Assembly: GCA_977017575.1 (NCBI GenBank)
Contig: CDRNVI010000005.1
Location: forward strand, 1 to 64,000
Reading direction: 5' to 3'
Source: Paramoeba atlantica
Taxonomy: Eukaryota; Protista; Discosea
Length of the DNA stretch: 64,000 bases
How positions within the stretch are numbered: the stretch's first letter is position 1; every line of letters starts with the position of its first letter. A program made the position numbers and the translations under genes. A model generated the notes under the pieces. That model made no database searches and was not told the origin of the DNA. It worked only from the letters and a program-made list of their open reading frames with translations. Shown here piece after piece: positions 4,858 to 60,789 of this stretch.

Positions 4858-6099
4858 ATGGAAAAACCTCGCGAATGTCCGACGAGCCGCCGCCGGCGAA
4901 GTTCGATGCACAGGGTCCCTTCCCCCTCCCCAGAGCGGCCGCGTCGAACTCGTCGAGGGTCTCGTTTCCCGTCTTACTTAAATTCCACTTGTTCGTTCTC
5001 GCGGAGTTCAACCCGTAGCGAACGCCGTCAAAAGGAAGATATTAAGAAGGAAAAAGCTCGAGAACGACATGAAAGGTCATTGGGAACTGCATGTCGTCGC
5101 TTGCTCGAACAAGCGAGAAGCGAAATTGGAACGCCTGAGTGCCCGCAGGTGTCAAAATTTTTCATAGAAAAACTTCGTAATCTTCGAAACTTCCCCTTCG
5201 AGGGCGTCCACCCTGCATCCTGAGAGTATCAGGCCCTCGGAGGTGGACGCCCTCGAAAGCTTTCCGAGCCGTGCACACGCCGTGTGCGACGACTTGTGTT
5301 CTCCGGAAATTCTGCGCGAGAGGTATCATCTCAGCTGCGCCGCGAGGGCGTTGCTGATGTTGTTCCTCAGTCTATCCGAGTTTCGATGCACCGCTTCGGA
5401 CACAAAGGTAGAAAGCGTGTCCGCAAGCCCTACTTGTCCAAGCGCCATCGCAAGCTTCGGATGGACTTTGCCACGGCCCATGAGCACTCGACAGTGCACG
5501 ACTGGGCTCCAGTTGTATGGTCGGACGAGACGAAGATCTCGCGCTTTGAAACGGGGGGAAGTCTTTGGACATGGGGGACCCCGGGGGAGGAACTGGGTGA
5601 AAAAGGGGTAATTCCCACGGTAAAGTACGGAGAGGGGCACATCATGATTTGGGCGTGCATGTCCCGAAGCGGTGTGGGGCATGTGCGTCTAGTTCAAGGG
5701 AACCTGAACGCCACACAGTACGTCGAGATTCTTGAAGAGAATCTTGCCCCCTCCATCGAAACTATGGGTCTAGACCCCCCAATGGTCATCTTCCAACAAG
5801 ATAGTGACCCCAAGCACACAAGCCATTGTGCGCAACGGCACCTCCGGGGTACCGGGTTTGAAGTCATGCGGTGGCCCCCGCAGTCCCCTGACTTAAATCC
5901 AATCGAAAACGTTTGGGGGGAACTCAAGCGGCGCCTTGCAGCGCACGATGATCCACCAAGCGGGGTCCGAGAGTTGTGGGAGAGGGTAAAAATGGAATGG
6001 GCGAACATACCACCCTCAGTATGTCGTGCCCAGGTGGACAGTATGCCTGCCCGTATGAAGGCAGTGCTGAAGGCTCGTGGGGGGAATACTAAATACTAA
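4858..6099 (+). mobile_element. Tc1-family DD34E transposase with one in-frame TGA at 5221-5223
   Basis: GRPRKLS linker just after the TGA; WSDE / QQD(34 aa)E in SPDLNPIENVW; ORFs 4651..5223 and 5284..6099 are in the same frame. Confidence 0.9.
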
Positions 6100-11886: not shown

Positions 11887-13284
11887 TCATACCTCTGGTA
11901 CATGATCACGATATTTCATCCCGTCAATACTGAAACCTGGGATTGGATACTGACCTGCAAACCCTTCCACATCATTTCGAAGACTCTCTATCTCAGCATT
12001 CTCGGATAGCTTGGCTACAAAATCAACCAATCGTTTACCAGCACGGAGCTGAATGTCCAACGCAATCTTCACGGCGCGTTCCATAAAGACGGCAATAAGT
12101 CTCATTTCCGCTTCTTTCATTCCTCGAGAAGTAAGCGCTGGTGTCCCAATGCGAACACCACCTGGAGAAGCAGCACTTTTATCACCCACAACAGTGTTTT
12201 TATTTATGCTGATCGATGATTTTTCTAGTATCTTCTCATATTTCGAACCTGTCAGGCCTAGTGGGCGTAAATCCCAAAGTAGTAAGTGATTGTCAGTCCC
12301 ACCGGTAATCAACGTATAACCTTTATCTATCAAAGCTTTGGACAGCTCCTGAGCGTTGCGAATGATTTGGCGACTGTACTCCTTAAAATCTTCTGTGGCT
12401 ACCTCTTTCAACTGTACTGCAATGGCAGCGATAACATTTTGATGGGGACCGCCTTGAAGGCCAGGAAAGACTGCCATATTGATCCGCTGAGCAAAATTAG
12501 TTGAGTTACCATCGCGCCCGAGCTTACGGTAAAATATCATGCCAGCTCTTGGTCCACGAAGGGTTTTATGAGTTGTTGTAGTCACTATGTCACAATGTGT
12601 AAAAGGAGAGCGCAGTAATCCGCTGGCCACCAGACCTGAGACATGCGCCATATCACACATTAACAGAGATTCTGTTTTGTCCGCAATTTCCCGAAATCGT
12701 CCGTAGTCAATATCGCGTGGGTAAGCGGATCCACCGCAAATAATTACTTTTGGAAGGTATATTTCAGCAATTTTCTTCAATTCTTCGTAGTCAATGATTC
12801 CATCAGAATCAAGGGAATACGGAAGCGATTCAAAAAATATTGAGGTCGCACTGATTCGCTTTTTAGCTGTATAGTAGCCATGTGTAAGATGTCCCCCCGC
12901 AGGAAGATCCATACCCATGATACGGTCATGTGGTTGTAAAAGGCCAGTGTACACGGCGAAATTGGCCGGTGATCCAGAATAAGGTTGAACATTGACCCCC
13001 CACTCCTTCGCATCCAAATGAAATGCCTCCAACGCACGTGATTGGCACAGTCCTTCGATTTGGTCAATAAATTGTGTTCCTCCGTAATATCTAGCTCCGA
13101 TCTCCCCTTCAGCATACTTATTAGTTAGATGTGAACCTAAACATTCTAGCACTGCTGATGAAGTAAAGTTCTCGGACGCAATCATCTCCAAACCGAAGTA
13201 CTGCCGCGCTTTTTCTTTTTCAAGAATGTCATAGACTGCGGAATCTTGCTCTTGTAACAGTCGATTTTGGGGTAACTTTTTCAT
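11887..13284 (-). CDS. SHMT: Serine hydroxymethyltransferase, 465 aa, intronless, no evident targeting presequence
   Basis: [31 protein letters not shown]-lysine motif [22 protein letters not shown]. Confidence 0.98.
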
Positions 13285-13499
13285 TAAGGCAAGAAAGATA
13301 TGGGTAAAGAAGGCTTCAAAAATTCATGAAAAAATAATAATACAGCAACGTTAAAAAATATCTCACTGTTATGAAAAAATATTTTGTTGAGTGATTATCT
13401 TTGAAATGAAAGACCTGCGATTTTTCTTAACTTCAAGAAACTGATTTCAACGATGAGAAGTGACTCGTCCGATGAGGCTTCCGAGTACAGCTCTTTTGA

Positions 13500-13670
13500 C
13501 TCTTCTTCCTCCTCCTCCTCCTCCTCCTCCTCTTCTTCTTCTTCTTCTTCCTCTTCTTCTCCTTTCTTCTTCTTCTTCTTCTTCTTCTTCTTCTTCTTCT
13601 TCTTCTTCTTCTTCTTCTTCTTCTTCTTCTTCTTCTTCTTCTTCTTCTTCTTCTTCTTCTTCTTCCTCTT
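13500..13670. repeat. (TCT)n/(TCC)n trinucleotide repeat
   Basis: Read directly. Confidence 0.98.
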
Positions 13671-13808
13671 CTGTGTGTGAGTGTGAAACAGATGAAGATT
13701 GGAGCCCCTCTGATTTTTCTGAGGATTCCTTCACGAGCGACGAGGAACCGTTTTTACTTCCCGACATACGTTACAGGCTCGAGGGGATAAAAAAATCAGG
13801 GGGAGGGG

Positions 13809-15055
13809 GGGGGGCGTTCGATGAGTACTCACCGAACGGGCAGCCCGTTCGATGAGTACTCACTGAACGGGCAGCCCCTTCGGTGAGTAATTTGCAGAAC
13901 CAGTCAGGGCAGAATCAGTCAGGGCATTCGACTTTTGTCGGATGATGGGGCGTAGCGACCCCAGCTTCCCTAGCTAACTCACCCGGCGTCGCACAACAAG
14001 ACGCTACATACCTAGGGTGGGTACGATCAAGGTCCCGAGGATGACACTACCCGGTGCCAGCAAAACAAGGCACAAATTAACTAGGGTAACGGTCACCCAG
14101 ACATCGCAGCGTGAGAATGACACCGCCCGGTACCGGTTATAACAAGGTACTAAGGAACTAGGGCGGGTGTCATTCAGCATAATCTTTGGAGTGTTTTTTC
14201 ACTTCAAAAGAAGTGTTTTTTAATAAAGAATATTTTCTTGTAGTATATAAAAGGGGTTAAAAAAAGATAAGCTGGCTGCTCGCGCTCGATCTGGTCAAAT
14301 CTTCGGATTTGACTTGCGTGCTGCGTGGCACAGCTCCTAGCAAGCGATAAGGGGGGGCTTGTTCTAGGGAGGTAACATCTCCTCGGAGATATAATGCCTA
14401 TTAATCATCATCAATTTGCAGAACGACCCGTTCGAAGAGTACTCATCGAACGGGACGCCCTGTTGCTTGAGAAAAATAATTTGCTGCAACATTTTGGGGG
14501 AAAAACGTGCATTAAACGCGCGTCATGGAATTCGATCGACTTGAGGAGGCTGTACAGAAACTGAATCTTTACGGCAGATAGCTGTATTCGTACCCCCCTT
14601 TTCAGCTCACAGTTGGGCCTTGCCTCTAGACAGGTAAACTAGGTGTCGCAGCATAGGAAAACGAGTTCACAATCCTGCGGAAGTGCCAGACATAGGTTCT
14701 CAGTGCGCGACCCGCGCGCTGGAGCGCGCGGGTCGCCAAAAAATATAATTATGTCCCAGGGCTACGCTCAAAGTTGGGCCTTGCTCGCAAACGGGGGCTT
14801 TTGCCTCCAGAAGTGGGCTACGCTCACAGTTGGGCTTTACCTCCATACACATAAACTAGGACGCAACTGTCGCATCTGGAAAAGCATTAAACGTTCTTTT
14901 TGTGGTTGACCGTCGATTCAATGAATTACTCACGGAACGGACAGCCCATTCCGTGAGTTTCATCGAACGGGACGTTACTCACCGAAGGGGCTGCCCGTTC
15001 AGTGAGTACTCATCGAACGGCTGCCCGTTCGGTGAGTAATCATCGAACGCCCCCC
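13809..15055. mobile_element. Non-autonomous ~1.25-kb element with ~80-bp TIRs built from palindromes
   Basis: 13809..13889 is the near-perfect reverse complement of 14976..15055; no coding capacity; TSD not resolved. Confidence 0.75.
13980..14175 (+). ncRNA. Three copies (13980-14019, 14048-14088, 14115-14175) of a conserved hairpin with a 1x10 internal loop
   Basis: CCC-G-[5-bp stem, ~10-nt loop]-YAANNAACTA-GGG with compensatory stem changes; function unknown. Confidence 0.7.
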
Positions 15056-15298
15056 TGGCCAAAATCAGTTCCAGGTGAGCCAGAAGCATCACACTACTCT
15101 TCACCCTCATCACTATGGTCTTCCGAATCAACGGCGTCGTTTTATTTAGCTACTGTAGAGCCGGAAGCGTCTGTAAGTTACGACGCTTAAGTACATGTAT
15201 CGGACAATGTGATGATGGGCATATCTATTGATTATAAGGTCGGGGCGTCCGATTAACACCGGACGATGGGACTTAGCGATCCCAGCCTCCCGAGCTAA

Positions 15299-15337
15299 GG
15301 CCGGCGCTAGCAAAACAAAGCGCTAAATAACTAGGCC
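15299..15337 (+). ncRNA. Copy of the 1x10-loop hairpin
   Basis: GGCC-G-GCGCT AGCAAAACAA AGCGC-TAAATAACTA-GGCC. Confidence 0.7.
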
Positions 15338-15903
15338 CGTTCAGGGCACTGGTCGTCCCACCGGGATCTCTAGTGAACGAGTGCGTCCTCACTCAACGTC
15401 CCTTGATGAGTCCTCGGTGGTGAGATTCTGACGCCTGTACTCTTCCGGAAACGGAGAGGATGCTCAGCCCCACTTAAAAAGACACTCAGGCCGACGTAGA
15501 GGTATCTCTGTAACGGAGATTCCTGCTACGATCCCATAGCCCTAGTCGGCCAAACGGGATATCTTATCTTATCAGGAGCTGGTGCACGGTGGGGGAAACA
15601 AGGGAGTTTCCTCTGGGGTGAAGGGGGGCATAGAGGGGGTATGTTTATGGGCTGGTGGGTTGGGTTGGGTTGGGTTGGGACAGAGAGATATGGCTCCCTA
15701 GTTTCAGCCTAGGTGCGCTGTGCGGATGCCGATGCTCGAAGCATCTGTGCCGACATGAGAGTACCTCAACCATAGAAGGCACACATCTGACTTATCCCCC
15801 TATAAGCCAATAATTACAGCTCCAGGGTAGGAGGGGTTCGCTACTCCCCAGCGTGGTTTAACAAGTTAATCCACGACCCTGCCTTAATTTTTTTGTGCGG
15901 ATG

Positions 15904-15946
15904 CCACCCTAGTTTCTTGACGTCTTGTTGTGTTGACGCCGTGTAG
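15904..15946 (-). ncRNA. Copy of the 1x10-loop hairpin (second minus-strand copy at 16635-16690)
   Basis: GCGTC AACACAACAA GACGT CAAGAAACTA GG on the minus strand at both sites. Confidence 0.65.
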
Positions 15947-15974
15947 GTCCACACTATGGCGATGGAGAAAGAGG

Positions 15975-16265
15975 TGGGGAGCGCGGCGGAGAGCGAAGCG
16001 GAGAGTGAGGCGGGCAGCGCGGCGGGAGCGCGGCAGGAGCGCGGCGGGAGAGCGGCGGGAGAGCAGCGGGAGAGCGGCGGGAGAGCGGCGGGAGCGCGGC
16101 GGGAGAGTGGCGGGAGAGCGGCGGGAGAGCGGCGGGAGAGCGGCGGGAGCGCGGCGGGAGAGCGGTGGGAGAGCGGCGGGAGCGCGGCGGGAGCGCGGCG
16201 GGAGAGTGGCGGGAGAGCGGCGGGAGAGCGGTGGGAGAGCGCGGCGGGGGGCACGGCGGGGAGCA
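15975..16265. repeat. GC-rich ~11-bp repeat (GGCGGGAGAGC-like); related tracts at ~19870-20000 and ~20640-20760
   Basis: Read directly. Confidence 0.85.
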
Positions 16266-17141
16266 CGGCGGAAAGACGGCGAAGGGCACGGCGAACGGGG
16301 GTGAAGGGGTACATGGGGCGGGGAGCTCGGCAGAGAGCGAAGCAGGGAGTGAGGGAACAAGGTACAGGTACAACAAAAAGGGGGTGTTTAACAAAAAGCG
16401 GTTGGTTGGTTGGTTCACAGAGCAGTTTGTCTCCGAGGAGATATGGCTCCCTAGTGCGGATGCCGATGCTCGAAGCATCTGTGCCGACATGAGAGTACCT
16501 CAACCATAGAAGGCACACATCCGACTTATCCTCCTATAAAAGGAAGCCAATGATTACAGCTCCAGGGTAGGAGGGGTTCGCTACTCCCCAGCTTGGTTTA
16601 ACAAGTTAATCCACGACCCTGCCTTAAATTTTTTGTGGATACTAGCCTAGTTTCTTGACGTCTTGTTGTGTTGACGCCGGGTAGATCCACACCATGGGCG
16701 CGGCGGAGATCAAGGCGGGGAGCGAGGTGGGAGTGAGGCGGTTGGACAGCGGGGAGGGCAGCAGGGAGCACGGGGGGAACGGCGTCGGGGTTTTTTTTTC
16801 CTACATGGAGAAAATCTTTGCCTCAACCGCCTCGACCGCCACCCGGTGTCCAACCGGCAGGCTTTTCTTGGTCGAGTGAGCTGGCCACCTTCCAGTGGCA
16901 AATGAACGGGTGTTTCCACCCACGCACCTCAGGGGAGACACCCCATTACAGGGTAGTGCGAGACTTGCATACCAGAGTTTCGTTGAATCTCGGATTGCGT
17001 CAGAGACTCTGGTAGCTCACTCGCTAAAAACTCCACTGCTCCGGATTGTTAGTCCAGGAGCGCTCCTAGCGTGGAGAAACGAAGGGTCTTGCCTAGAAAA
17101 AAGGATCTAGTCCCTTCGCTTCTCCGGGAGATGGGGAGGGG

Positions 17142-18010
17142 AAAGGGGGTATTAAACAAAAGGAGGTATTAAACGAAAAGGGGGTATTAAACAAAAAGGG
17201 TGTATTAATCAAAAAGGGGGTATTAATCAAAAAGGGGGTATTAATCAAAAAGGGGGTATTAAACAAAAAGGGGGTATTAAACAAAAAGGGGGTATTAAAC
17301 AAAAAGGGGGTATTAAACAAAAAGGGGGTATTAAACAAAAAGGGGGTATTAAACAAAAAGGGGGTATTAAACAAAAAGGGGGTATTAAACAAAAAGGGGA
17401 TATAAACAAAAGGGGGTATTAAACAAAAAGGGGGTATTAAACAAAAAGGGGGTATTAAACAAAAAGGGGGTATTAAACAAAAAGGGGGTATTAAAAAAAA
17501 GGGGGTATTAAAGAAAAGCGGGGTATTAAAAAAAAGGGGGGTATTAAACAAAAAGGGGGTATTAAACAAAAAGGGGGTATTAAACAAAAAGGGGGTATTA
17601 AACAAAAAGGGGGTATTAAACAAAAAGGGGGTATTAAACAAAAAGGGGGTATTAAACAAAAAGGGGGTATAAACAAAAAGGGGGTATAAACAAAAAGGGG
17701 GTATTAAACAAAAAGGGGGTATTAAACAAAAAGGGGGGTATTAAACAAAAAGGGGGTATTAAACAAAAAGGGGGTATTAAACAAAAAGGGGGTATTAAAC
17801 AAAAACGGGGTATTAAACAAAAAGGGGATATTAAACAAAAAGGGGGTATTAAAGAAAAGGGGGGTATTAAAAAAAAGGGGGGTATTAAACAAAAAGGGGG
17901 TATTAAACAAAAAGGGGGTATTAAACAAAAAGGGGGTATTAAACAAAAAGGGGGTATTAAACAAAAAGGGGGTATTAAACAAAAAGGGGGTATTAAACAA
18001 AAAGGGGGCA
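17142..18010. repeat. 18-bp satellite (AAACAAAAAGGGGGTATT)n, ~48 units; short arrays at 18477-18576 and 19793-19838
   Basis: Read directly. Confidence 0.97.
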
Positions 18011-19024
18011 TTATACAGAAATTCACGTCGTCTTTTCCCTTCCCGACATAGAATCAATAAATTAGGTAAATAACACATGAAACTTGAATAAAATCAACAT
18101 TCACAAAATACACTTACTCTAAATCCCTTATTCCTTAATACGCCTTCCCTCATATTCGTCTTTCATACTATAGTATAATCCTTATTCCAAATTCAAGTAA
18201 CTTACGAATGGGCATTGCCCACCAACCCGCGAAATGGCTGGGGGTTGGTGGGTGGGAACGATTTTGTAACTGTTTGAAATTGAATGTCTCTATAACACAA
18301 GAAATAATATTTGATATAATCCGATCAAACTAGAAAATTCAATAATAACTAGATCAAATAAAACATTCCCTCCGATAATTTATTATTAAGATCATAGTAA
18401 TCATACTATGTGCCCCGAAGGGCCACCACTCATCACGTATAATAAAAGTCGTCTAAATTTCAAATCGTATACTAATAAAAAGGGGGTATTAAACAAAAAG
18501 GGGGTATTAAACAAAAAGGGGGTATTAAACAAAATGGGGGTATTAAACAAAAAGGGGGTATTAAACAAAAAGGGGGCGCTCCACGGGCACTTCCGTGAGT
18601 TTTTGAGACACTTCGATGATTTCTCATCGAAGTGCCTACGTGTCACAGGGTGACTCATCGAAACGTCAATCTTCTCATCGAAGGTGATTTTAATTGCTTT
18701 GGAAAGAAAAAAATCGAGAACATGAAAATAAGAAAGCGGCGACACTGAGAATCTGTGTCTGCCACTTCCGCAGGTTTGTGTATTTGTTTTCCTATACTAC
18801 GACACCTAGTTTACGTGTCTGGAGGCAAGGCCCAACTTTGAGCGAAGCCCACTTCTGGAGGCAAAAGCCCCCGTTTGCGAGCAAGGCCCAACTGTGAGCG
18901 TAGCCCTGGGACAGAATTATATTTTTTGGCGACCCGCGCGCTCCAGCGCGCGGGTCGCGCACTGAGAACCTATGTCTGGCACTTCCGCAGGATTGCGTAT
19001 TTGTTTTCCTATACTTCGAGACCT

Positions 19025-19159
19025 GGATGACACTACCCGGTGCCAGTAAAACGAGGCACTAAATAATTAGGGTGGATGTCATTCTGGCAACGTAGAATGG
19101 GTGGCACCGCCCGGTACCGAATATAACAAGGTACTAAGAAACTAGGGTGGGTGCCATTC
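19025..19159 (+). ncRNA. Two tandem copies of the 1x10-loop hairpin with long outer stems
   Basis: GGATGACACTACCC...GGGTGGATGTCATTC and GGCACCGCCC...GGGTGGGTGCC. Confidence 0.7.
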
Positions 19160-19298
19160 GGGCTAATCTTTGGAATGTGTTTGTGTTTTTTTTATCCACC
19201 CTCAAAAGATAGAGTGGTTTTTTTTGGTCAAGGGGCGCCTTATTTGCATTACCTAAGGCGCAGGGGTATAGCGCACCTCACCTCCCTAGCTGTAACCT

Positions 19299-19391
19299 AA
19301 CTCCTCTCCAAGCGGAGGTCAACCGTAGCTTGCTATGGCTGGCTCTCCGGATACGTCGCAAGACGTATTCGGACTGCCCGTTTGGGGAGTT
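19299..19391 (+). ncRNA. 93-nt three-way-junction RNA-like element (second copy 21045-21137)
   Basis: Closing stem AACTCC/GGAGTT plus CCAAGCGG/CCGTTTGG; CUUG- and GCAA-capped arms. Confidence 0.55.
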
Positions 19392-20453
19392 GAGGGGCCA
19401 TAACTTTTCGGAGTCAAAAGGCCCAATACATCATGTGCACGCGAAGCTCTTTTGAATAGTTTTGTGCGTTTCGTAGACAGCGAAATGCGTCGCACTCAAG
19501 AACAAGAGGAAGAAGAAGAGTTACCTCGCACTCCAGAGGAATTACGAACTCCTGGTGCCTGGGATGACAGACTTATTTTTAGCCCCTTGGTTGGGGCCGA
19601 AGCTGCTGCACGTACTTTGCTTCCGTCAGTTCGTGTATGTCCAGGTTGTGCTGAGTTTGCTCCCGAGTCGAAAATGCAGCTACCACCTCAAAAGTAATTA
19701 AAATCACCTTCGATGAGTTTCTTTCGTTTCGATGATTTTCGTTTTGACACGTGGGCGTTTCGATGAGTACTCACGGAAGTGTCCTCGTACCCAAAGGGGG
19801 TATTAAACAAAAAGGGGGTATTAAACAAAAAGGGGGTATACGGGCAAAGGGGGTACGGCGTCAGGGTGCACGCCGGGGCGCACGACGGGGAGAACGGCGG
19901 GGCGCACTGCGGGGAGCACGACGGGGCGCACGGCGGGCTGAACGGCGGGGCGCACGGCGGGGAACACGGCGGGGAGGGCGGTGGGGAGCACGGCCGGCAG
20001 TCTGCGAAAGGCGCGGTGAAAGGGGGGTGAAGGGGGGAAGGGGTACATGGGGTAGATAGGTCTTAACAAAAGTCAACAACAAGCAACAAGGTACAGAATC
20101 AAAACAAGAACAAGGTACCAGATGGGCTGGTGGGTGGGGCAGAAAAGTCGACAAGGGACCAACAAGGTAGCGGATTTTATGCCCTTGTAAAGATGAATTA
20201 CCCTGTTAAAATGTAAAAAAAAAAATTCCCAAGATCCATTTTATAATAAATAAAATAAATTACTTCAACACACCCGTCAAAAATCTTCAGATCGATCTCT
20301 CTTACTGTTTTACCCCCCTGTATAGTCACTTGCCTCAAACGTATGTAAGGCGCGCTCGACCGCCAAAATTTCCGGTTTGTTTATTTCATAGGGTTCTTCC
20401 CATAAGCTGCCTGTGGCCGTCATTGGGTCTATTGAAGGGAATAATACTGCGCC

Positions 20454-20495
20454 CCTTGTTGTTTTCTGTACCTTGTTGGGTTCTGTACCTTGTTG
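20454..20495 (+). other. Tandem truncated SL relics (minus-strand cluster at 20070-20170)
   Basis: CCTTGTTG-TTTTCTGTACCTTGTTG-GG-TTCTGTACCTTGTTG. Confidence 0.75.
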
Positions 20496-20861
20496 ATTTG
20501 TCCCCCCCCACTGCTATTTCCATTGTCCCCCCCGCCGCTCTCCCCGCCGCGGGGAGACCCCTCCTGGACGAAAGAAGAAATCGCCCTCCCGCACCGTCCT
20601 CCGGGTCGCCCTTCCGGTTGCCCTCCTCGACGCCCCCCATTATGACCCCTTTGCCTGCCGCGCTCCCAGCCGCGCTCCCCGCCAGGTTCCTCGCCGCGCA
20701 TCCCGCCGTCCTTCCCGCCGCCCTTCCCGCCACCCTTCCCGCCGCCGTTCCCGCCGCTCTTCCCGTTCTCCACATCGCTCTCTCCCTCCGCTGCGCTATT
20801 TACTGCGCTCCCCGCCCCGCTCCCTCTCACCGGCCCCTTCCTTGTCTCACTGTCCCATGTT

Positions 20862-20917
20862 GTGGAGCTACCCGGCGTCAGTAAAACAAGACGTCAAAAA
20901 ACTAGGGTAGTATCCAC
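20862..20917 (+). ncRNA. Copy of the 1x10-loop hairpin
   Basis: GTGGAGCTACCC-G-GCGTC AGTAAAACAA GACGT-CAAAAAACTA-GGGTAGTATCCAC. Confidence 0.7.
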
Positions 20918-21171
20918 GCAACAATTCAAATTTAGGCAGGGTAGTGGATTAACTTGTTAAACCACGCTGGGGAGTAGCGAACCCCTCCTACCCTGGAGCT
21001 GTTAATTATTGGCTTCCTTCATTGGAGGATAATATTGGAAAACTAACTCCTCTCCAAGCGGAGGTCAGCCATAGCTTGCTATGGCTGTCTCTCCGGATAC
21101 GTCGCAAGACGTATTCAGACTGCCCGTTTGGGGAGTTGAGGGGCCATAACTTTTCGGAGTCAAAAGGCCCA

Positions 21172-24100
21172 AATCATCATCATCATAGTCACTTGAACAC
21201 GGAATGAATAATGATATACATGAACATTCTCACAGTATATTATATACACTTCTTTTTTGTATCTACTCTCTCATTTGTAAACATGTTACCAAGGTTTTTG
21301 TTTTTAAAGTCAAATTCTAGAGGCCCATGTTTTGTGAATCGTCATTAGATAAATAATTTCTCAGCTGAGAGAATACAATCGACCCATTTAACTCCTGCAG
21401 GCGCAGCGAAAATTCGTTCAGTGTTCGGACCCTATCAAGTCCGCTGCAGTCCGCCAACGTATGCAACAAGTGCCGGAGCCCGTGATGCATAGCACCACCG
21501 GAGAGGACTGGGAGGCATACGAAACGCTCTTGAGGTATCATCCCGGAAGCCACGTATGTGCTGTGCTTGCGCGTAATGGCCTCTCTCATCAAGGTACCGC
21601 TACGTTTCCGTACATTAGTGGGCGCCAGCTCGTGAATTATTGTTAGGTCATAAAAGATTTCCCCAGTTGCCCAATGTATTACAATGTCAGGTCCTGACCG
21701 ATGGAGGCTCGCATTTCTACAAACTTTTTGATGATCACTTTTTCGCCATTGTGGGAACGATTCCCCGCATGTAGAGCATTTATAAGAAGTAAACTGTCGA
21801 GGTTCCCTTTCGCATGGCACACCCGCCTTCATGCACAGTTCATAGATAATACGCACCAGATTATTATGTTTCATTGTTGTATTATTTCCGGAACACTGGA
21901 CGCATCCAGCTATGTGCGAAAAGGCTGATGAAGAATCCAGAAGGGTGCGGCATCCTGGGCATTGCAGACTTTCGGGAATACGGGGGTGGCTTAGACCAAG
22001 ACGGCATCAAAGCTAATGTGAAGAATTTGGAAGGCACTAACTTTGCCGTAGAATGAAGCCACGCGGAGTTCACTTTTTCACTTGCTGCTCTCAGCACTGG
22101 TGCAATTTTCGGGTCCTTACTCAACGATTCTTTAATGGCTCTGTTAAGCTTTGCTTCAGTTACAAATTCATCGTGGGGAGGGGTTATCTGACCTTCATTT
22201 CCCACCGGCGATGGAGACGTGAGACTGGGTGCTCGAACTGAATAGGAATTAAGTCGTTCAAGAGTACTGTGCCTTGATGCTTCATACGCCGATTTTCGCA
22301 AGAGATCAGTGGGCGTTAACCCCAATCCTCCGCTCTTCACAGGTAGACGCGCCCAAGCAATTTGCTTTGGTGTCATCGATCCAAACCATGCAGTAAGAAC
22401 TTCTTGCACTTGCTTGTCAAAAGATTTTGCCATTTCAAAAGTTTCTTCCGGTCGATGCACCCTTATATGGTATCGATGTCGTACATTAACACATCGCGAC
22501 AGGAGGAGAAGCGAAACGTTGTTTGCTCCCATGTCACAAAGCCGCCGAAAATCGTTAGATGCTTTTCAAGCTTGGCAAGAAGCAGCTCACTGACTCGGGC
22601 TGCTTCCCCTACGTAGGCTCCTAATGTTTTGACTGCCTTCTCCGCTATCTGAACGCCTTCATTCGCTAGACTTTCGGGTAGGCGAATATTGTTCAGACCG
22701 CTAAACCATACACACTTTTGAGGGGCAAGGCAGATTTCTTTGCTTAGAAGAAGTTCTTTGAGGCGAACATAGGCAGCTGCAACAAGATCTTCCTCAGTTG
22801 ACGCAATATTGATATCATCAACATAAGCGTATATATGTAGCATGGGAAATTCTTGTGCAATTGTCTCCAGTATTGGCTGAAGAAAGGAGCAGAAGTATAG
22901 AGTCGACAACGGCGACCCTTGGCGAACTCCAGCCGAACTTTCAACTGTTGAAAACAGTTCCCCGTTCTTTCCGTAAAAGAGGAGTTCAGACGCTGTCCCA
23001 TATTCGGCAACAAATAGTCGCTGAAAAGGCCGAAGGGCGCTCAAAGCAAAAATTGCTTTTGCAATCTCGCCGCGTGAAGGGCTATTAAAAGCGTTCTTCA
23101 TATCCAACGAGAGGATAGCACACCCTTCCATATATCGTCGATTGAGTTCGTGAACAATAGTCTCGCAGCCAGCGCGACTCATTACCCCATGCTGCATCGG
23201 CAGGAAAAGCTTTTCAAATTTATGTTCGTTACGCAGAAGAAGGATTAGTCCAGCCAACTTGAGAAAAATTTCTCCCATTGCCACCGGTCGAACGGCATGA
23301 GCTGTTTTAGGGAGTGCAACTAAGCGTGCTCTCCGCAGTCTGCGCATTACATCCTTGGACAGCATTCCGTTAATTAAATCGCACATCATGTGGCTTAGAC
23401 TCGTGCAACAGATCTCATCGTCCAAGAGCAGACGAATGATGGCCTCTGTGGTACCGGATGGACCTGGGGCGGCGCCTTTTGCGAGTCTCTTTCCTGCTTC
23501 TCGGAGTTCATGGGGCGGGATACATGCTACCTTCGGGGCGTCGGTGGGAAGCTCAAAAGAAATCGGTAAAGATGGGTGTAGTTTTTGTAATTGAGACAAT
23601 TTTTCTTCATCCCCTAATGATGTTTCGGTGATGTCTTGATCTAACACGCGCGTCGCTTTCTTAATCGCTCCTTCCAAAACCAGTCGTGTCGCTTTTTTGC
23701 CTGCTCTCAGATCTTTAGCCTTTTTCTCCACTTCACTGTTTCCTGCGTTCGTCTCCTGAGTTTGAATTGGGCGGCGACGACGCTTTTTTCCAATGAGATG
23801 GCGCACTGTAGCTAACGAATGTTTCATTGCCGACATGGTTCTGTGCCAGATTTGATTTCGTTGGTCGTAAGAAGAATCTGCGTAATCCCGCATTATGTCA
23901 CGATAGATAGAGACAACACAGGGCACAAACTCTGCACTGACAGTCCGCATGGTTGGCATTGGATCGAAATCCAAGTCTGCTTCCGTATGAGAAAATCCTT
24001 GATTACTTGGAATTCCTTTAGCGTCCACATCAATGCTGCTTTTTGAATCCTTTCGATTTAGCCATTGTATTGAATAAACTCTCACATTAGAGTTTGGAGG

Positions 24101-25204
24101 AATGAACCCACGAAATTGCTCGCCGCATTTGTACCCTTCTATACCTTCGTACTGGAGAGACATCCGTCCGATTCCGGAACGCTTCTTAACTGACTTAACC
24201 ACACCTTTCGATATATTCATCTGCGAGGAATCGCTGAAGCACCATGCCATCAAGCACGAGTCCCCTTGTTTCGCCGTTTTTGATGAATCCCAGATGGTAT
24301 CCGGTGCCAGTGGAAACTGCTCCGTTGGGTTTATCGACTTATTCAACTTCTCTATCATCTCGGCCTCCTTGGCAACTTCTATGACAGACTCTGTTTCAGC
24401 AGGAAGTTCAAAGTTCGGCATCGTGATATTGTTTTCGTCAACTACCTCGTGCAGTGTCGTAGACCCGTCAACCCTTCCCGTGCTCAATGGGGTGTCCTCA
24501 GGAGTTAAACAGTCGGCGTATGTCTGACATTCGACATCTGCGTCCTGCGTCGGCTGTTCGGCTGAAGTTTCATCATTCGTCGCAGTGATCGACTCAGTCG
24601 TCGTAGTGCCTGGCCAAACGACGCTTGCCTGAGACTCGGTATTGACGTCCTGCATCCCTAACGTTTGTTCCGCTGAAGATTCTGTATTTATCGTAGTGAT
24701 CGGGAGGCAATCTAACTTTGATATCGTTCTTCTTTCTTTTCCTCGAGCGGTTTCTGCAATTTGGCGTTCCCTTGTCTCACGCTCCTCGGCTGTAGGAACA
24801 CCGTGCAGTGTCAGCAGCCCATTCCACAGTCTTTCCGACCACTCCAGCAACCTTACCGAGTGTTTGAAGACGCGAAGATGGTTCAGAGTGGGGAACTTCA
24901 TTACTTGAGCTTATCGTTGTGTGATTTTCTTGTCGCTGTTTTCCAATGATCACTTTTATGCGAGGTTTGCGTGAGGGGATTGCCGTTGTTGTTGTTGTTG
25001 GGTCCGGGCCGTTTGTCTCCGAAGAGATGTGGCCTCCTCACTTTCCGCGTAAGTAGCGGTGCGGGTGCTCCACGCGGGGAGTAAATCTACAGTGCGAGAG
25101 CCTAGGCTCAACCGCAGCATGTAGACACCCGACTTGCCTCCTCCGGGAGAATGAGGTGTCATGCCCTAGTTGTTTAGTGTCTTGGTATCTTGATACCGGG
25201 CGAC
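21172..25204 (-). mobile_element. Near full-length RLE-type non-LTR retrotransposon (family A), frameshifted
   Basis: ORF 22463..24901 (APGP, RPVAMGE, DMKNAFN, GVRQGSPL, AYVDD) continues in 21882..22532 and 21317..21874 (CCHC finger, GPDIVI..YDLT endonuclease); hairpin copy at 25158-25204 in the 5' region. Confidence 0.92.
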
Positions 25205-25280
25205 CCATGCAAAGCGCGTGGCGATGGGGGTGTTGGCGAGGGCGGCGCACCGGGGCGAAAAGGGAGGCCAATTTATGGTA

Positions 25281-25737
25281 TTAACGTAAATGAGAGCCCT
25301 CGCCTAATTTCATAACGTAAACTTTTAGGCAACAAGGTACAGGGGTAGAGGGGATTGCCGTGGTCACTGAGTCTTCGCACTGCCTACGTGACGTTTCAGC
25401 TGCTTTCTCTTTTGTTTTCTTTTCTTCCTCTGCGCGTGCGTCCAACTGCTTTTTCAACTCACTGAATGACATGCGAAAATTTCTTTCTGTATCATCTTTT
25501 CCGGTCGGCAGCGGGAGTAGACTGGGGAACCTAAGCTCTATTGCGTTTTCGGCCGACGAGGAATCTGCTGCAGGGGACTTCGTCGCCGGAGGGGACGATA
25601 GCGATGGCGGTACTGCTGATTGCGCCTGCGACAGATAAGGTTCTTGTTGTTGTTGTTTAACCCGTTTGGCCATGACTGGCTATGGGTTCAGAGTACACCC
25701 TAGTTATTTAGTGCTCGTGTGAAACGGCACCGGGTAT
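25281..25737 (-). mobile_element. 5' end of a family-A element: hairpin (25695-25737) plus ORF start MAKRVKQQQQ, truncated
   Basis: SFSELKKQLDARAEEEKK matches SFNELKKQIEARQEEERK in ORF 49454..51052. Confidence 0.7.
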
Positions 25738-26057
25738 TACCGTACTCCGTGGGTGGTACGCTGTCAGTCGCGCGCAGACTTTCCCAGTGGGATGCCGCAC
25801 TCGCAGATAGACAAGCAATACCTGTCAGGTTGCGTGGTCTGGCTTGTCATCCGTGACTTCAATGCCCGATGGATTCGCATCCTGGGGCAAAGAAGTAGTG
25901 GAACAGTCGTTATATTCTGTTCCACCACCAGGGATGACTCACGCTAGGGTGTGTGGAGCTTGCGAGGCTCTCTCACCAGCGGGGCTCACAATGGAGCTCG
26001 ACCAGTGCCCTTCACAATTTAAATTTTTGCATATGGAGACTACCCTAGTTTCTTAGC

Positions 26058-26790
26058 GAAATCAACGTCTTCTCTCCCCTGCATCATAATGAAAGTAAAC
26101 CATGTTAAAACCAATTTTCCTAGTAATATATCGCTTCAATGAAAGTTTCAGTCCAATCATCCCGACCATTTTTTGTTTCCAATAAACTATATCTATCTGA
26201 CGAATTATCAAGGTACCTGGCCAATATAATAAAAACAATCACAGAAACCCAGTCAACAACTCCTCAAACTTACGAACGGGCATCCCGTCCACCAACTCCG
26301 CGAAATGGTTGGGGGTTGGTGGGTGGGCGCAATTTGAAAAGGGTAAAAGAAGGAGTGTCGCTATACACAAAAACAATATATATTACTTCATCCCGAGTAC
26401 TACTAAATTATAAATCTCATTACATCTAACAACGGGTGCCCCTTTCGGGGCCACAATCTGTAAAAACAAATCATAATATAAATATTATGTGCCCCGAAGG
26501 GCCATTATGTCAATCATCCTAAATTTCTAAACGTATACTTCTAGAAATCAACGTCTTCTCTCCCCTGCATCATAATGAAAGTAAACCATGTTAAAACCAA
26601 TTTTCCTAGTAATATATCGCTTCAATGAAAGTTTCAGTCCAATCATCCCGACTGTTTTTAGTTTCCAATAAGCTATATCTATCTGACGAATTATCAAGGT
26701 ACCTGGCCAATATAATAAAAACAATCACAGAAACCCAGTCAACAACTCCTCAAACTTACGAACGGGCATCCCGTCCACCAACTCCGCGAA
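26058..26790. repeat. 247-bp direct duplication (26058-26304 / 26544-26790) of a dispersed non-coding repeat
   Basis: Read directly; related reverse-complement copies at ~57100-57296, ~58110-58320 and ~58694-58755. Confidence 0.9.
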
Positions 26791-27025
26791 CCAACCCGTT
26801 CGCCCGTAATCCAAACTCCCGCGCGCACGTGTTTGTAGCAAATGGTGGCGGCCAATTACTAAAAACTCGTAACGTTTTTCAAGAATTCCTACCGCGTAAT
26901 GAAATTGAATAGTATATATTTTCTATATAGCTAATTTTTTTATTTTTTTTTGATTCTATATAATGAGTTTTACTAATTAATGGTACATTCATACCTATGC
27001 GAGTTTCCATACATGTATGTATACA

Positions 27026-27790
27026 TGCTTATCCGGTGCGGCTGATAGGGTCCGCTGGGTTTTCGGCAGATCTCACATAACGTGCCATGATACATACGCC
27101 AAGGTTCTGATTTGTCTTCAACACACGCTTGAGCTCTCCGGCAATACTGTCGGATTTCGCGATCTTGCGGTTGAATGCTGCTTGGCAAGAGGTGTTGTCA
27201 ATAAACTAATCAACACAGGTTCCTTTTTGAAAGTGGTGTGTCAGTTTTTCAAACGCAAGTCGAACGGCCATCGCCTCAGCGTGATTCACTTCGTATTTGA
27301 ACTCAGGTTGCCATTTATCGCCAACAATAATCACTTGTCCGTCGTCCCGGTAAAGAACCGCGCCCCATCCTTTAGCTGACGCATCTGTGTACAGTCGGTG
27401 TTTATGCGGGACAACGTCAGGATGCGGAGGTGGTGATATAGGCTCATTTACCAAAATGATATCACGCCAATTCGCGAGAATCGATCGGGTGGCTGTCGGA
27501 AGAGGAACCGGTTGATGTGCGAGTTCGGGGCATCGGTTTAACTCATTGATACGTCGTCTAACAATCTTTAAGGGGAAATGATAGTCTGGAATAATATGAC
27601 CCAAGACCGCTGCTGCATAGAGGAGGAGCCCCACCGCCGTCTCCAATTGAGAGTACGTAATATTACGAAACCGATCTCGTGACATTTTCCGTATAACCCT
27701 AGGCCCCAGGTTGACCTTATGGGTTACGTGATTATAGAAGACGCCGTTAAAAACATATTCAGTGGAGGGGTCAAAACCAGCCTCCTTGAA
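27026..27790 (-). pseudogene. YR-retroelement RT C-terminus/RNase H fragment, close to the 51.8-kb element
   Basis: LYTDASAKGWG, YEVNHAEAMAV, ENPADP; premature TAG at 27206. Confidence 0.9.
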
Positions 27791-27952
27791 CAAACCACGG
27801 CGGGGAGCGCGGCGGCGGCGACGCATGGGGTAGCTCAAGCTCCCTCCCCAAGAGGGGGGGCGAAACAGGTCGCGGGAAGGGCGACGCAGCAGGGTGGAGG
27901 GGACGGCGAAGGGGGCGGCGCTAGGGGGTGAAGTGGGCGGCGGAAGGGGGGC

Positions 27953-28480
27953 TTAATTTCCCCAGGGGTGAAGGGGTGCATGGGGGAAATTGATGGGGGT
28001 GCATGGGGGAAATTCAACAAGGTGTGCTGTGTGATCCTCCGTATCTCCAGATGCAGCGGCTATTCCATCGTCAAATGGCGGAGACCCGAGAGATCGACCG
28101 GGCTCCCCTCCTGTTTCCGGAATTTGCACGTCTACAGAATTCAATGCTGCACCGGACATGGCGCTTGATGCCGTTCTTATAGCATCAGCTGCGACAGCGC
28201 ACGTTCTTTTGGCAAGTGGCACTGTAGGAGTTTGTATTCTCGACCGATAAGGTGTGGATGCGCAATGCAGTGAAGGCGATGAAGGCCGCAGGCCGGGCGA
28301 TGGTTGCGAGCGTAGTGCAGAGGAGGATGGTTCAGGTTGCGGTGATTTCTCTGATGTTGGCGGCGGAGGCGGCGGAGATCGCACCTCGGTTGCTTTCTTC
28401 TTTCGCCGGGTGGAGGGGAGAGGCAAAATTTCGGGAGATACTCCCGATTCCTTCGCCTTAGAGCGGGTGACCACTCCCAT
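27953..28480 (-). pseudogene. N-terminal fragment of a non-LTR ORF (MGVVTRSKAK...) preceded by SL 3'-end relics
   Basis: Similar to MGMLTRAKAKETGV at 49535; TTGTTGACTTGTTG upstream at ~28510-28530. Confidence 0.6.
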
Positions 28481-28804
28481 GGGAAAGTAAGAATAAAGGG
28501 GATATAAAACAAAAAGTCAACAAGTCAACAATGAAATATACTTGAAATATACTTGTATTCCCCATGTGCCCCTTCACCCCTATCCTTGGAGACCTTCTCG
28601 TTTTTTTTTAAACTATCCAGGGTGTCATAGAAGGAGGTTTTCTTGACCTTTCTTTTGTTAAGGGGGGTGGACTTTATAAGCTTTTTCCTATATGGGTATC
28701 TATAGATATTATGTATATAATAATACATATTGGCATTGAACAAACGAAACTATGTTGATACGTTTGGCTCAAATGCTGTACCTATTCGCGTAAGGAAAGT
28801 TGCT

Positions 28805-29020
28805 ATGACTTCATCGACGCGTTCTTTACGGAATTTACGGAGTGTGTCACCCGGTGCAGACGAGCTCGCGCCTACCGAGCCGCTGCCTGCACAGGCTTTG
28901 AATCAACTATGTACGGTTGTGAGAGAAAAGTTACTTGTTGCTCAAGGTGAAAGACCAAGTGTAAGAGTTCGTGCGGTATTTCGCAGGAAGGATGAACCGA
29001 ACGAGCCCACACAGATGCTG
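28805..29020 (+). pseudogene. Gag N-terminal fragment of the 42.1-kb YR family
   Basis: PTEPL.Q.L...CTV.RE.L...PSV.V.A.FRRKD shared with ORF 42164. Confidence 0.85.
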
Positions 29021-29398
29021 TTAAATTGTGAAGGGCACTGGTCGAGCTCCATTGTGAGCCCCGCTGGTGAGAGAGCCTCGCAAGCTCCACACACCCTAGC
29101 GTGAGTCATCCCTGGTGGTGGAACAGAATATAACGACTGTTCCACTACTTCTTTGCCCCAGGATGCGAATCCATCGGGCATTGAAGTCACGGATGACAAG
29201 TCAGACCACGCAACCTGACAGGTATTGCTTGTCTATCTGCGAGTGCGGCATCCCACTGGGAAAGTCTGCGCGCGACTGACAGCGTACCACCCACGGAGTA
29301 CGGTAATACCCGGTGCCGTTTCACACGAGCACTAAATAACTAGGGTGTACTCTGAACCCATAGCCAGTCATGGCCAAACGGGTTAAACAACAACAACA
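29021..29398 (+). repeat. Inverted duplicate of 25645..26022 (family-A 5' UTR with hairpin at 29306-29348 and ATG at 29370)
   Basis: Near-identical reverse complement. Confidence 0.9.
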
Positions 29399-29399
29399 A

Positions 29400-32300
29400 A
29401 TGCTGTACCTACTGCTGCCTTCCGGGGATAAGTGGTTCCGCAACTGGGCGTACACTTCCGTCCCATTCAGTTCCTGAAGTAGGAGCTTGAACTCCATTTC
29501 AGTTGCTCGACAATTTAAGAGAGTCGCGTCGGATAGGACATGCAACAGAGATCTCGTATTTTGATGAAGAGAGCCGCAGGACAGCACTGGGATGCACTGA
29601 AATGCGAAGTCGGGAATTTTTCCGGATGTCACATACGTATCCCGTTTCCGCTTGATTGCATCTTTTTTTTTTGCTTAATGTATTAGGGATTTATGCGCAG
29701 CTAAAGAAATACTTAGACGGCTGCACGCAAACTCAAGAATATAGTATATAAATTCAAACACAAATTCACGATAAGCTGAGTCAGCTTGTAAAATACATAG
29801 AATATCATTTTTGGGATAGTTTTTTTTTTTGGTGGTCCAAAATTTTCGAGTTGCAAAGTAGAGCAAAAGCTTTATTAACTTTTGCAAAAAGTTTTAACAT
29901 ATGGAAATTGTTTCTAATGTTATATACAAATCAAGTCATAGAAGACCTAAGGAGTATACCCAGTCAAAAGTTAATAAAAACAAAGGTCTTAATAAAAGCA
30001 AAGATCATCTAATCCATCCGGTTTTAGGTTGTAGTTTGTTTGCTCGTTGCTTTTTTTTGGAGGTTTTATTCACAGATTTTTAGGGAATAATTTACCGCAT
30101 GATTGTTTTCGACTTTAGGCGTTGTTGTTGGAATTGACGTGGACTTGCGCATATATATATACCATATGTATATTGCATAAAAACGAATCTCTCACTATTA
30201 TTATTTTGCGGTATGTTCTTTTAGTTGCAACTTTACGCAGAGAAAATAAGCGGTCTTGACACGGGTTCTTTTTGCGAACTTTATTTTTGCATCAGTAAGA
30301 ATTTCGCCTTGGAGCGGGTGACCATATTATTATTGCATATTATTATTATTGCATCAGTAAGAATTTCGCCTTGGAGCGGGTGACCACTCCCATAGAAATG
30401 TAGAAAGTAAAAAAATCAACAACGCATTCTCGTTCGCGACTCGCTTTGCCGCCCTATTACGCCTCCTCCTCCACCCTCTTTGCCGCCCCCTCCTCCGCCT
30501 CCCTTTGTGCTGCGCAGGAATTCGATAAGGAGATCCGGCAGGTCTTAGTGAAATGGTGTGACGCTGACGAATTTTTTTATCTTTTTTTTTATTTTTTTAT
30601 CATGTGCCCCGTAGGGCCACGGTCAGATCTCATACAGAATCAAAAGTATCTTCTTTGATCAATTCTTTCCGTAAACTATAATAAGCTAATACTTTTATTT
30701 TTTTTCTGATGATTAGAGACTAATTTTCTGCGTCTGCCGATTTGACAAATAGCTAGGCATCTGGGCATAGACTTCGTTTCCATTTAAGTCTTGAAGAATC
30801 AATTTGAATTCCATTTCCACTCTCCCTCGATCCAGCATCCGCCAACGCGTGAAGTACGAACCTTGTGTTTTGGTGGAGAGATCCGCAAGAAAGCACAGGT
30901 AGACACTGGAGGGCGTAATCAGGAATCATTCCAGTGGCGACGTACGTTTCATTCTTGCGTGCGATGACATCTTGCAGAAGTTTCGTGCAAGTCTTGTTTT
31001 GGTTGGATGATGATAATTCATGGACTACCGATAGGTCATAGAAAATTTCTCCCGTGTTCCAGAATACCACCAGATCAGGCCCCAAACGATAATATTGCCC
31101 TCTGCCCTCCCTCTTCGCCGCTCTCCTGGCGGTCTTGCTCACCGTGCTCCTCCCCCGCATCCTCGCTGCCCTCCTTGTCGCCATCTCTGCCGCCCTCATC
31201 ACTTCCCTTGTCGCTGTCGTCCTTTTTTTTTTCTATATGAATATATGGAGTATCATTCTTTTTTTTGGTATGTAAATTTCTTAGTTTTTCCTCCTTCCAC
31301 AAGCAATCAGCCCACCCCAAACTAGCAAACAATTTCCCCCCACGAAGCCGCCTCCCTGAAGAGAAATGCAGTGAAAAAGTGACACCCGGAAGGTAAAAAC
31401 ACCCGGGGGTTTTTCCTACCCCCCCACACTGTGCCCTACCCCCCACAATTAAATCCCAGCTCGTACCGGTTGAGCTCGCGAGTAGAAAACCCATTTCGCA
31501 TGAACATTACTCTTCAATTCCGTATCCATTAATAATCGCGTCGGGGGATGATGTAGGCAGCCGCAATACGAGCATACGACGTATGTATCCCGTTTCCGCT
31601 TGATTGCATCAGTAAGAAGCTGGGAACAAGATTTCGCTTGATTGGAGTTCGATAGCTCGTGCACCACAGTTAGATCGTAAAATATTTCCCCGGTTGACCA
31701 ATATATCACCAAATCAGGCCCTGAGCGAAACAGCTGACGTCCGGCACATGTTTTGTCATGAATCATTTTGTTGCTTGGAAACACTTTATTCTTGCAAATT
31801 CCGCATTGCCAAGTCGAAAAAGATCGCGGTTCTTTCTCGCATTGTATACCGGCCTTTTGTGCCAAATCGAAGATATACTTAACCAGCCGATTGTGCTTCA
31901 TTGTGGTATTAAGCCCTGTACATTGGACGCATCCGGGGATGTGCTGCAAAGCTGTTTTGTTGTCGAGTAACATACGACAGCCGGGGCACAGCAGCGATTT
32001 CGGGAGTCGAGGGTGAGGCATCCCAAGGCGTGTCATGATTGCAATCTGAAATGCACGCGTGGGTACAAATTTAGCATTAGACTGTAACCAGTCATAGCTT
32101 CCTTTCCGCTCTCAGATCTTTAGAACGGCAAAAGCTCTTATGAGCTACAAAACTTTGAAAACTCTCAATCCTACCTCTCCATCCAAATCTGCCAACCACT
32201 ATGACCTTGAACTTTGAAAAACCTTTAAAACCCGTAGTCCTCCCCACTGTTCTTGTGAGGAAGGTATTGCCGAAGCTGCGAGTGGGCAGCTGCCCCGTTT

Positions 32301-60605: not shown

Positions 60606-60789
60606 CTTTCTCCCAACTTAGAAAGTACCTGGCGGACCAGCACACAATGGAATACGGGTTTTAGCTTTTCTGTTTTTAGTATCCCGGGTTTTTGATAACC
60701 GGCTCTGGGGCTTCGTGTTCTTGGGTTCCCCTTTTTGTTTATTACCCCCTTTTATTATAATTTTTATTATTACCCCCTTTTAAAAAAAA

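Follow-up and report, generated by a model that had tools for sequence, protein, structure and literature searches.

A covarying bulged RNA hairpin common to LINEs and SINEs of a spliced-leader protist: a candidate recognition element for reverse transcriptase

Long interspersed nuclear elements (LINEs) of the stringent type and the short interspersed nuclear elements (SINEs) associated with them possess a common 3′ stem-loop with an internal loop, which is needed for mobilisation (PMC1636434, PMC4176376). The 3′ stem-loop of UnaL2 is recognised by LINE reverse transcriptase (RT) and has been borrowed by SINEs (PMC1636434), the LINEs of zebrafish being a further described case (PMC4176376). 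Another module with several carriers is Pr77, or L1TcRz, which comprises the first 77 nt of the element, adopts a double pseudoknot resembling that of hepatitis delta virus (HDV), cleaves at +1 and is found in trypanosomatid L1Tc, ingi, NARTc, and SIDER (PMC3185411, PMC3383444, PMC4035085). Finally, central domains that define superfamilies of SINEs (CORE, V, Deu, Ceph, Nin, and others) are conserved in sequence, their function being unknown (PMC4758252). Here, we address a structured motif detected in a 64,000-nt stretch of DNA assigned to Paramoeba atlantica (contig CDRNVI010000005.1, positions 1 to 64,000; hereinafter “the window” means this whole stretch). A preliminary description of the window listed 12 copies of this motif, proposed that it may be a new ribozyme or an RT-binding/translation element and compared it with 5′ HDV ribozymes of the retroelements R2 and L1Tc, as well as with epsilon of hepatitis B virus (HBV). 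The latter is a bulged hairpin located near the 5′ end and bound by RT, with a bulge on the 5′ side that templates protein-primed synthesis. Our analysis demonstrates that the motif is a genuine structured, covarying, and strand-specific RNA hairpin of retroelements devoid of long terminal repeats (non-LTR), and that one 47-nt unit with an invariant bulge recurs in LINEs of four subfamilies and in SINEs of several families. Among known systems, the 3′-tail stem-loop of UnaL2/UnaSINE1 from eel and ZfL2 from zebrafish comes closest to it (PMC1636434, PMC4176376).

All 12 copies are present in the window at the places listed previously, and the architecture reported for them was recovered in nearly all cases by minimum free energy folding with flanks. 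The outer stem, 4 to ~14 bp long, ends with CCC/GGG, while the hairpin loop is A-rich, varies from 9 to 13 nt, and has AACAA at its 3′ end. The only element of the initial drawing to be revised is the internal loop, which was presented as a single G opposite a strand of 10 nt. In 29 of 41 scored distinct copies this G forms a G-U pair with the first base of the 10-nt strand, and in 10 more a G-C pair, so that the arrangement of stems and loop is retained and the “1x10 internal loop” turns into an inner stem of 6 bp and a one-sided 9-nt bulge on the 3′ side. Base pairing was assessed for the 11 distinct copies of the window, where 92% of cells appeared to be paired compared to 35–38% with partners slid; both sides change in 8 of the 12 pairs, and none of 500 shuffles reached the observed score. 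Covariance model R1 built from the same 11 copies was run on the 45.7-Mb genome and gave at least 150 matches, all of at least 50 bits; alignments of 87 and 92 R1 matches contain 95.4% and 94.5% of paired cells, respectively. Among 52 distinct complete variants, 23 combinations of the inner stem occur, including GTACC/GGTAC, GCGTC/GACGC, GTGCC/GGCAC, GCGTC/GACGU, GTGTC/GACAC, GCGCT/AGCGC, ATGCC/GGCAT, GCATC/GATGC, and GTACA/TGTAC. In the same set, the bulge AAnnAACUA has a constant length of 9 nt, with positions 1, 5, 8, and 9 being invariant and positions 2, 6, and 7 conserved at 90%. Covariation in both stems, pointed out in the preliminary description, holds in the shuffle test as well as in two larger alignments. 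It is solid, but it goes back to a modest set of ancestral types, each of which has numerous descendants, and not to hundreds of independent events.

G-U and A-C cells are informative with respect to the strand: the former (54) exceed the latter (12), which indicates that the structured strand is the one drawn in the preliminary description. This one-strand excess and the compensatory changes in stems point to single-stranded RNA, making it extremely unlikely that the motif operates at the level of DNA as a promoter box, cruciform, or target site of an endonuclease. Although rearrangement breakpoints do cluster in the motif and its conserved part includes palindromic CTAG, orientation is strictly sense relative to the elements and no pattern of target-site duplications (TSDs) indicates insertion into the motif. 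It is also rather improbable that the hairpin is just a stable block without a specific ligand, which stalls exonucleases or polymerases and in this way, for instance, protects the 3′ untranslated region (UTR) or limits read-through. Such a role would be in line with GC-rich stable stems, of which the outer one attains ~14 bp, and with accumulation of 5′ truncations at the inner stem, but stability alone leaves unexplained both the invariant unpaired bases and the fixed length of the bulge across 23 inner-stem combinations.

Searches in Rfam, suggested along with the initial description, returned no family: at gathering score nothing matched in the window or in six related loci of 10 kb each (60 kb), and at E ≤ 10 nothing relevant was found on 13900–21000 (7.1 kb) or on 13900–14420 (521 nt, a triple array of hairpins). 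In particular, covariance models of hammerhead, HDV-like, twister, twister-sister, pistol, hatchet, hairpin, and VS ribozymes had no match at gathering score in the window and related loci; in the preliminary description, HDV, hammerhead, twister, or pistol consensus could not be fitted either. The pattern CCGGN{19,23}AANNAAYTAGG has 10 matches in the window versus 0.01 expected from dinucleotide-preserving shuffles, and a pattern scan of metagenomes yielded four matches, all of them lacking the inner stem and attributable to chance. The hairpin has a new sequence, and neither this sequence nor the geometry of the bulge is represented in Rfam, while the kind of element is already known.

The carriers of the hairpin were analysed in the window and at other genome loci (designated by L and a number), ~290 kb being examined. 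Four subfamilies of LINEs with an endonuclease of apurinic/apyrimidinic (APE) type have one or two sense hairpins just after the second open reading frame (ORF2). In L036 (2428–4962, minus strand), an ORF of 844 aa contains a complete RVT_1 domain (E 4.6e-31), and its homologues combine Exo_endo_phos with RVT_1, i.e., belong to the APE type. The stop codon of this ORF is the TAG in the hairpin bulge AACUAGGG (L036:2428–2470, minus strand), so that ORF2 terminates within the first hairpin; beyond the stop there are a further hairpin and a UTR of 240 nt. L056 and L069 have the ORF2 C-terminus ...GHIARM...WKYRAQNKDSW... and a 430-nt 3′ UTR with the variant designated as hairpin X, followed by (CAA)n. 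In L040, L058, and L066 the ORF end ...AQDRVKWRS... is separated by 130 nt from two hairpins and a (TAAC)n tail, and in L039 a single hairpin is positioned 25 nt past the stop. The ORF2 C-termini of the clade conform to the pattern GH(V/I)xRM ... W(K)Y(R/Q)AQ(D/N)(R/K)xxW. Identity of the C-terminal proteins of the four subfamilies is 30–39%, and their 3′ UTRs can be aligned with one another in the hairpin alone. The 3′ ends of these LINEs are copied by three SINE families at 82–96% identity, TSDs are found on four insertions carrying the hairpin, and its orientation is always sense relative to tails, spliced-leader relics, and ORFs.

The most complete arrangement is offered by a SINE of 508 bp (13906–14413, plus strand), whose ends were read directly and are marked by the 12-bp TSD AATTTGCAGAAC. 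Its 5′ part of 114 nt (the head and hairpin 1) is SINE-specific, and 380 nt of its 3′ part copy the end of an APE-type LINE, namely hairpins 2 and 3, 3′ UTR, and a short ATC/A-rich tail; over positions 115–494, the SINE matches the terminal 387 nt of the L036 LINE with 95.3% identity. In L035, an independent copy shares both ends with this SINE but is flanked by another TSD, (A)CCGGATACGT. The right-hand end carries the variable A/ATC-rich tail, and the hairpins are thus sense-oriented. Judged by R1 and by fold, they occupy on the plus strand 13977–14023 (hairpin 1, inner stem GCGTC/GACGC, 53 bits), 14045–14091 (hairpin 2, GTGCC/GGCAC, 58.7 bits), and 14121–14168 (hairpin 3, GTACC/GGTAC, 58 bits, with an outer stem of ~14 bp). 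Hairpin 3 differs from the copy at 19102–19182 by the compensatory replacement of TGACA/TGTCA by TGGCA/TGCCA. The latter copy is part of a “type a” element (19025–19434, plus strand; repeats D6, D7, and D10), which is either a 5′-truncated SINE or a LINE 3′ end and possesses hairpins 2 and 3 at 19031–19077 and 19105–19152 (plus strand; 62.1 and 59.5 bits), an Sm-like AAUCUUUGG site, T-runs, and a structured 3′ region (19294–19434). A full TSD-flanked copy of type a is present in L030.

The preliminary description placed three copies of the motif in 5′ regions of family-A non-LTR elements, two of them ~20 nt ahead of the ATG. In fact, these copies belong to separate SINEs. The hairpin read at 25159–25205 (minus strand) is harboured by a nested SINE of ~345 bp (24990–25347, minus strand; TSD CGGCAATCCCCT), which starts with the spliced-leader relic CTGTACCTTGTTG and ends with (CAA)n. 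The 358-nt segment with this hairpin is missing from the other family-A copies L043, L046, and L047, and the hairpin together with the 3′ region is ~82% identical to the 3′ UTR of the L058 LINE. Hairpin X was read in the window as two identical copies, at 25693–25739 (minus strand) and 29304–29350 (plus strand), and comparison of repeats and insertions assigned the first of them to a SINE copy of 379 nt (25644–26022, minus strand), the second copy of this SINE being revealed by inverted repeat I1 (29021–29399, plus strand). What had looked like a 379-nt perfect inverted repeat is thus a pair of hairpin-X SINE copies in opposite orientation, with the hairpin ~45 nt upstream of the (CAA)n tail in both. 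More than 20 further hairpin-X insertions have one and the same 3′ end and vary in flanks, (CAA)n length, and 5′ truncations, and identity between this SINE and the L056 LINE 3′ UTR amounts to 96%. The family-A LINE starts at ~25641, directly downstream of the SINE 25644–26022, and has no hairpin of its own, the “ATG” ~20 nt after hairpin X being inside the SINE tail region. The two copies preceding the ATG, initially described as one duplicated sequence, are indeed identical, the unit present twice being the SINE and not the 5′ region of a LINE. The analogy with 5′ HDV ribozymes of R2 and L1Tc fails because the hairpins are not at the 5′ end of family A. Their misreading as a 5′ module arose from SINEs nesting beside and inside other LINEs.

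Position in the 3′ UTR, strand, covariation, sharing between LINEs and SINEs, and survival across diverged UTRs constitute the signature of stringent-type LINE–SINE pairs, from which we infer, by analogy and with moderate confidence, that the hairpin is a 3′ UTR recognition element for LINE RT borrowed by SINEs. Among the functions proposed initially, RT binding appears on the same grounds to be the best supported one, and the ribozyme is left without support. If so, the ORF2 protein would pick its template for target-primed reverse transcription via the hairpin, with a putative contact surface formed by the invariant AAnnAACUA bulge, the loop (...AACAA), and the three closing C-G pairs of the outer stem, and with the variable stems as a scaffold only. 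SINEs would keep one to three hairpins for mobilisation in trans, and microsatellite tails, (CAA)n, (ATC)n or (AATC)n, and (TAAC)n, may then anneal to the nicked target.

Several observations weigh against this assignment. The distance from the hairpin to the 3′ tail ranges from ~45 nt for hairpin X to 300 nt and comprises 150–300 nt in three of the four LINE types, versus location within the last ~60 nt in UnaL2. Hairpins are also met in heads or middles of SINEs, such as hairpin 1 and hairpin 4, the latter ~260 nt from the tail. The LINEs that dominate the window belong to the type with restriction-like endonuclease (RLE), and their ~30 distinct 3′ ends have no sense hairpin. Distant LINE homologues from public metagenome contigs (L076–L081, 26–29% identity) have no motif either, indicating that it is specific to the present lineage. 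As to transcripts, the sequencing runs found were contig-level ones, none being registered as RNA, and the single run that might be RNA gave no coverage of the stretch. The varying distance of 45–300 nt and the presence in SINE heads and middles, as well as the stop codon of one LINE inside the bulge, might rather be expected of a hairpin that binds a host protein or another protein encoded by the element and controls RNA stability, export, localisation, or termination of translation, but not the choice of template by RT. Assembly of a ribonucleoprotein on the UTR is also suggested by the Sm-site-like AAUCUUUGG/AAUUUUUGG and the covarying terminal hairpin that follow hairpin 3. We consider this explanation possible though unlikely, taking into account that among ~290 kb the motif was found only in one LINE clade and its SINEs, that RLE-type LINEs of the same genome are free of it whereas a general signal of the host should have a wider distribution, and that sharing between LINEs and SINEs is the classical signature of RT recognition.

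A separate body of data concerns breakpoints. At least five junctions map exactly to base 1 of the 10-nt strand (L042/L037, ~26055 of the window, L066:2153, L023:1671, and L001:1063), and ~12 unpaired nucleotides are nearly invariant within the 47-nt fold. Both features may hint that the hairpin is cut where the inner stem meets the bulge, either by itself, as a new class of small self-cleaving ribozyme, or by a cellular RNase. Nevertheless, this reading of the hairpin is very unlikely. No Rfam ribozyme was matched even at E ≤ 10 on stretches of 521–7101 nt, cleavage at a site that follows ORF2 but precedes the 3′ tail would detach the template from its priming end, most copies have inherited their arrays of two or three hairpins in intact form, and the loop or the foot of the outer stem is where other truncations are found. 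Moreover, stalling of RT at a stable or protein-bound inner stem explains the junction cluster equally well. It is also highly doubtful that the hairpin is a catalytic or RT entry/exit site (either a new self-cleaving motif or a point of RT start, stop, or template switch) instead of a passive handle; if true, this would account both for junctions at the boundary of the inner stem and bulge and for chimeras joined inside the motif. The clustering itself suggests stalling of RT or template switching.

As for individual junctions inside the hairpin, they are located in L042/L037 (C27), at ~26055 of the window, L066:2153, and L023:1671 (minus strand in the last three cases), L001:1063, L007/L008, L014, and L023:1038–1061. 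The initial base of the 10-nt strand is precisely where several 5′-truncated copies start, some copies end with ...AACTAG| or ...AATTAG|, where the vertical line denotes the junction, and one chimera, CCCGGTGC|CTAGGG, joins two different hairpins. In the window, the 3′-half fragment TAAGAAACTAGGG... (26023–26066, minus strand; half hairpin at ~26040–26066) was interpreted from its fold and junction as the start of the longer hairpin-X element, the 5′ truncation of which coincides with base 1 of the 10-nt strand; the corresponding intact upstream hairpin is present in L050.

Two candidate arrangements of the hairpin in LINEs were considered and rejected. The 539-aa RT ORF of L031 (tandem repeat), which adjoins the triple array, suggested antisense hairpins in a LINE 3′ UTR. 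However, the last 67 residues of this ORF show no coding constraint (95% nucleotide versus 73% amino-acid identity), four copies diverge there into different simple tails, and TSD-flanked copies put the array in sense to the tail. In L030/L071 the hairpin module resembled a native 3′ UTR of an RLE-type LINE, but it turned out to be a SINE of 545 bp with the TSD ATGTGCGATCGAA, behind which the ORF of the RLE-type LINE resumes. The RLE-type LINEs dominating the window (46603–48081, plus strand; 40648–42117 and 21317–24901, minus strand) have a C-terminal CCHC knuckle and then RSGPD...D.T..H, i.e., the layout of restriction-like endonuclease as in R2, CRE, and SLACS.

Four more hairpins of the window were found by R1 outside the elements described above. 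A single hairpin with the inner stem GCGCT/AGCGC and outer stem GGCC/GGCC (15295–15341, plus strand; 57.6 bits) is preceded by a segment that looks like a SINE head by similarity (15243–15296). A type 4 hairpin (GCGTC/GACGT; 15902–15948, minus strand; 56.3 bits) is enclosed in the first of two direct repeats of ~240 nt (D8, D9, and D12), and the second repeat contains another one (16640–16686, minus strand; 58.2 bits), the flank of which, 16526–16630, matches 20928–21032 in inverted orientation (inverted repeat I4). An 11-nt tandem repeat (15958–16298) lies between these two type 4 repeats. Hairpin 4 (20866–20912, plus strand; 62.4 bits) belongs to a retroposon read at 20455–21186 (plus strand), in which relics of the spliced leader and a GC-rich repeat precede the hairpin, while a structured 3′ region and (ATC)4 as the tail come after it. 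This retroposon abuts, tail to tail, the 3′ end of the minus-strand family-A LINE.

Relics of the spliced leader CGATAAAGATACAGTTTCTGTACCTTGTTG head two SINEs, at 25330–25347 (minus strand) and 20455–20500, and at 60780–60822 of the window a poly(A)-tailed LINE end lies directly against the spliced-leader sequence. A literature search on the 3′ end of the spliced leader found no paper, and a search for tRNA in 13000–30000 revealed none. The SINE tails (ATC)n and (CAA)n abut complementary microsatellites, tail to tail with 3′ ends or GAT codons of RLE-type LINEs (window 21172–21186; L031 ~5925–5940; L056 and L062, the latter corresponding to 29385–29399 of the window), which is what annealing of the RNA tail to the nicked target would be expected to produce. 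The Sm-site-like AAUCUUUGG/AAUUUUUGG is kept 3′ of hairpin 3 at 14170–14216, 19160–19225, and many loci, and is followed by a terminal hairpin with compensatory changes (CACUUC/GAAGUG versus CCACCCUC/GAGUGG) and then by T-runs, the whole layout resembling the 3′ domain of small nuclear RNA or spliced-leader RNA. Palindromic units of ~31 nt around TTCGATGAGTACTCATCGAA with the hairpin CGAACGGG...CCCGTTCG recur both in tandem and beside insertion sites of SINEs; they were observed at 13815–13890, 14427–14459, and 19750–19790 of the window, in flanks of L048/L049, and in the LINE 3′ UTR of L049/L071; the SINE at 13906 is inserted within an array of such units. An 18-nt minisatellite, (GGGGGTATTAAACAAAAA)n, extends over ~1 kb at 17037–18000 and has short scattered relics at 18490–18580 and 19795–19840.

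Comparison with known systems separates the hairpin from most of its apparent relatives. It resembles HBV epsilon in being a bulged hairpin and, putatively, in binding RT. Unlike epsilon, it resides in the 3′ UTR and has the bulge on the 3′ side, and the TSDs and tails of its carriers indicate target-primed reverse transcription; it is not a priming signal of the epsilon kind. Similarly to Pr77, it is a short module common to autonomous and non-autonomous non-LTR retroposons of a euglenozoan, but it is a simple bulged hairpin located in the 3′ UTR, matches no HDV model, and does not take the place at the extreme 5′ end of LINE and SINEs that is typical of Pr77, the family-A LINE starting at ~25641 without it. 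Central domains of SINEs provide a parallel as one short domain common to families that differ in head and tail, whereas the present domain is a covarying RNA hairpin carried by the partner LINEs too. The difference from UnaL2/UnaSINE1 concerns details: the sequence of the hairpin is unrelated and its asymmetric loop is a one-sided bulge of 9 nt; it occurs in one to three tandem copies, often 150–300 nt from the tail, and may include the ORF2 stop; four LINE subfamilies have retained it although their UTRs are otherwise unalignable; and the host is a spliced-leader (kinetoplastid-like) protist, in which RT binding is putative. What unites the two systems is a sense hairpin with an internal loop in the LINE 3′ UTR, copied by TSD-flanked SINEs and followed by short-repeat tails, and conservation of specific unpaired bases along with the structural role of stems. 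The hairpin represents a defined RNA signature of LINE–SINE partnership for a spliced-leader protist, a kind of host in which little has been described about such pairs, and can be used both as an annotation marker for these repeats and as a substrate for assays of RT binding and retrotransposition.

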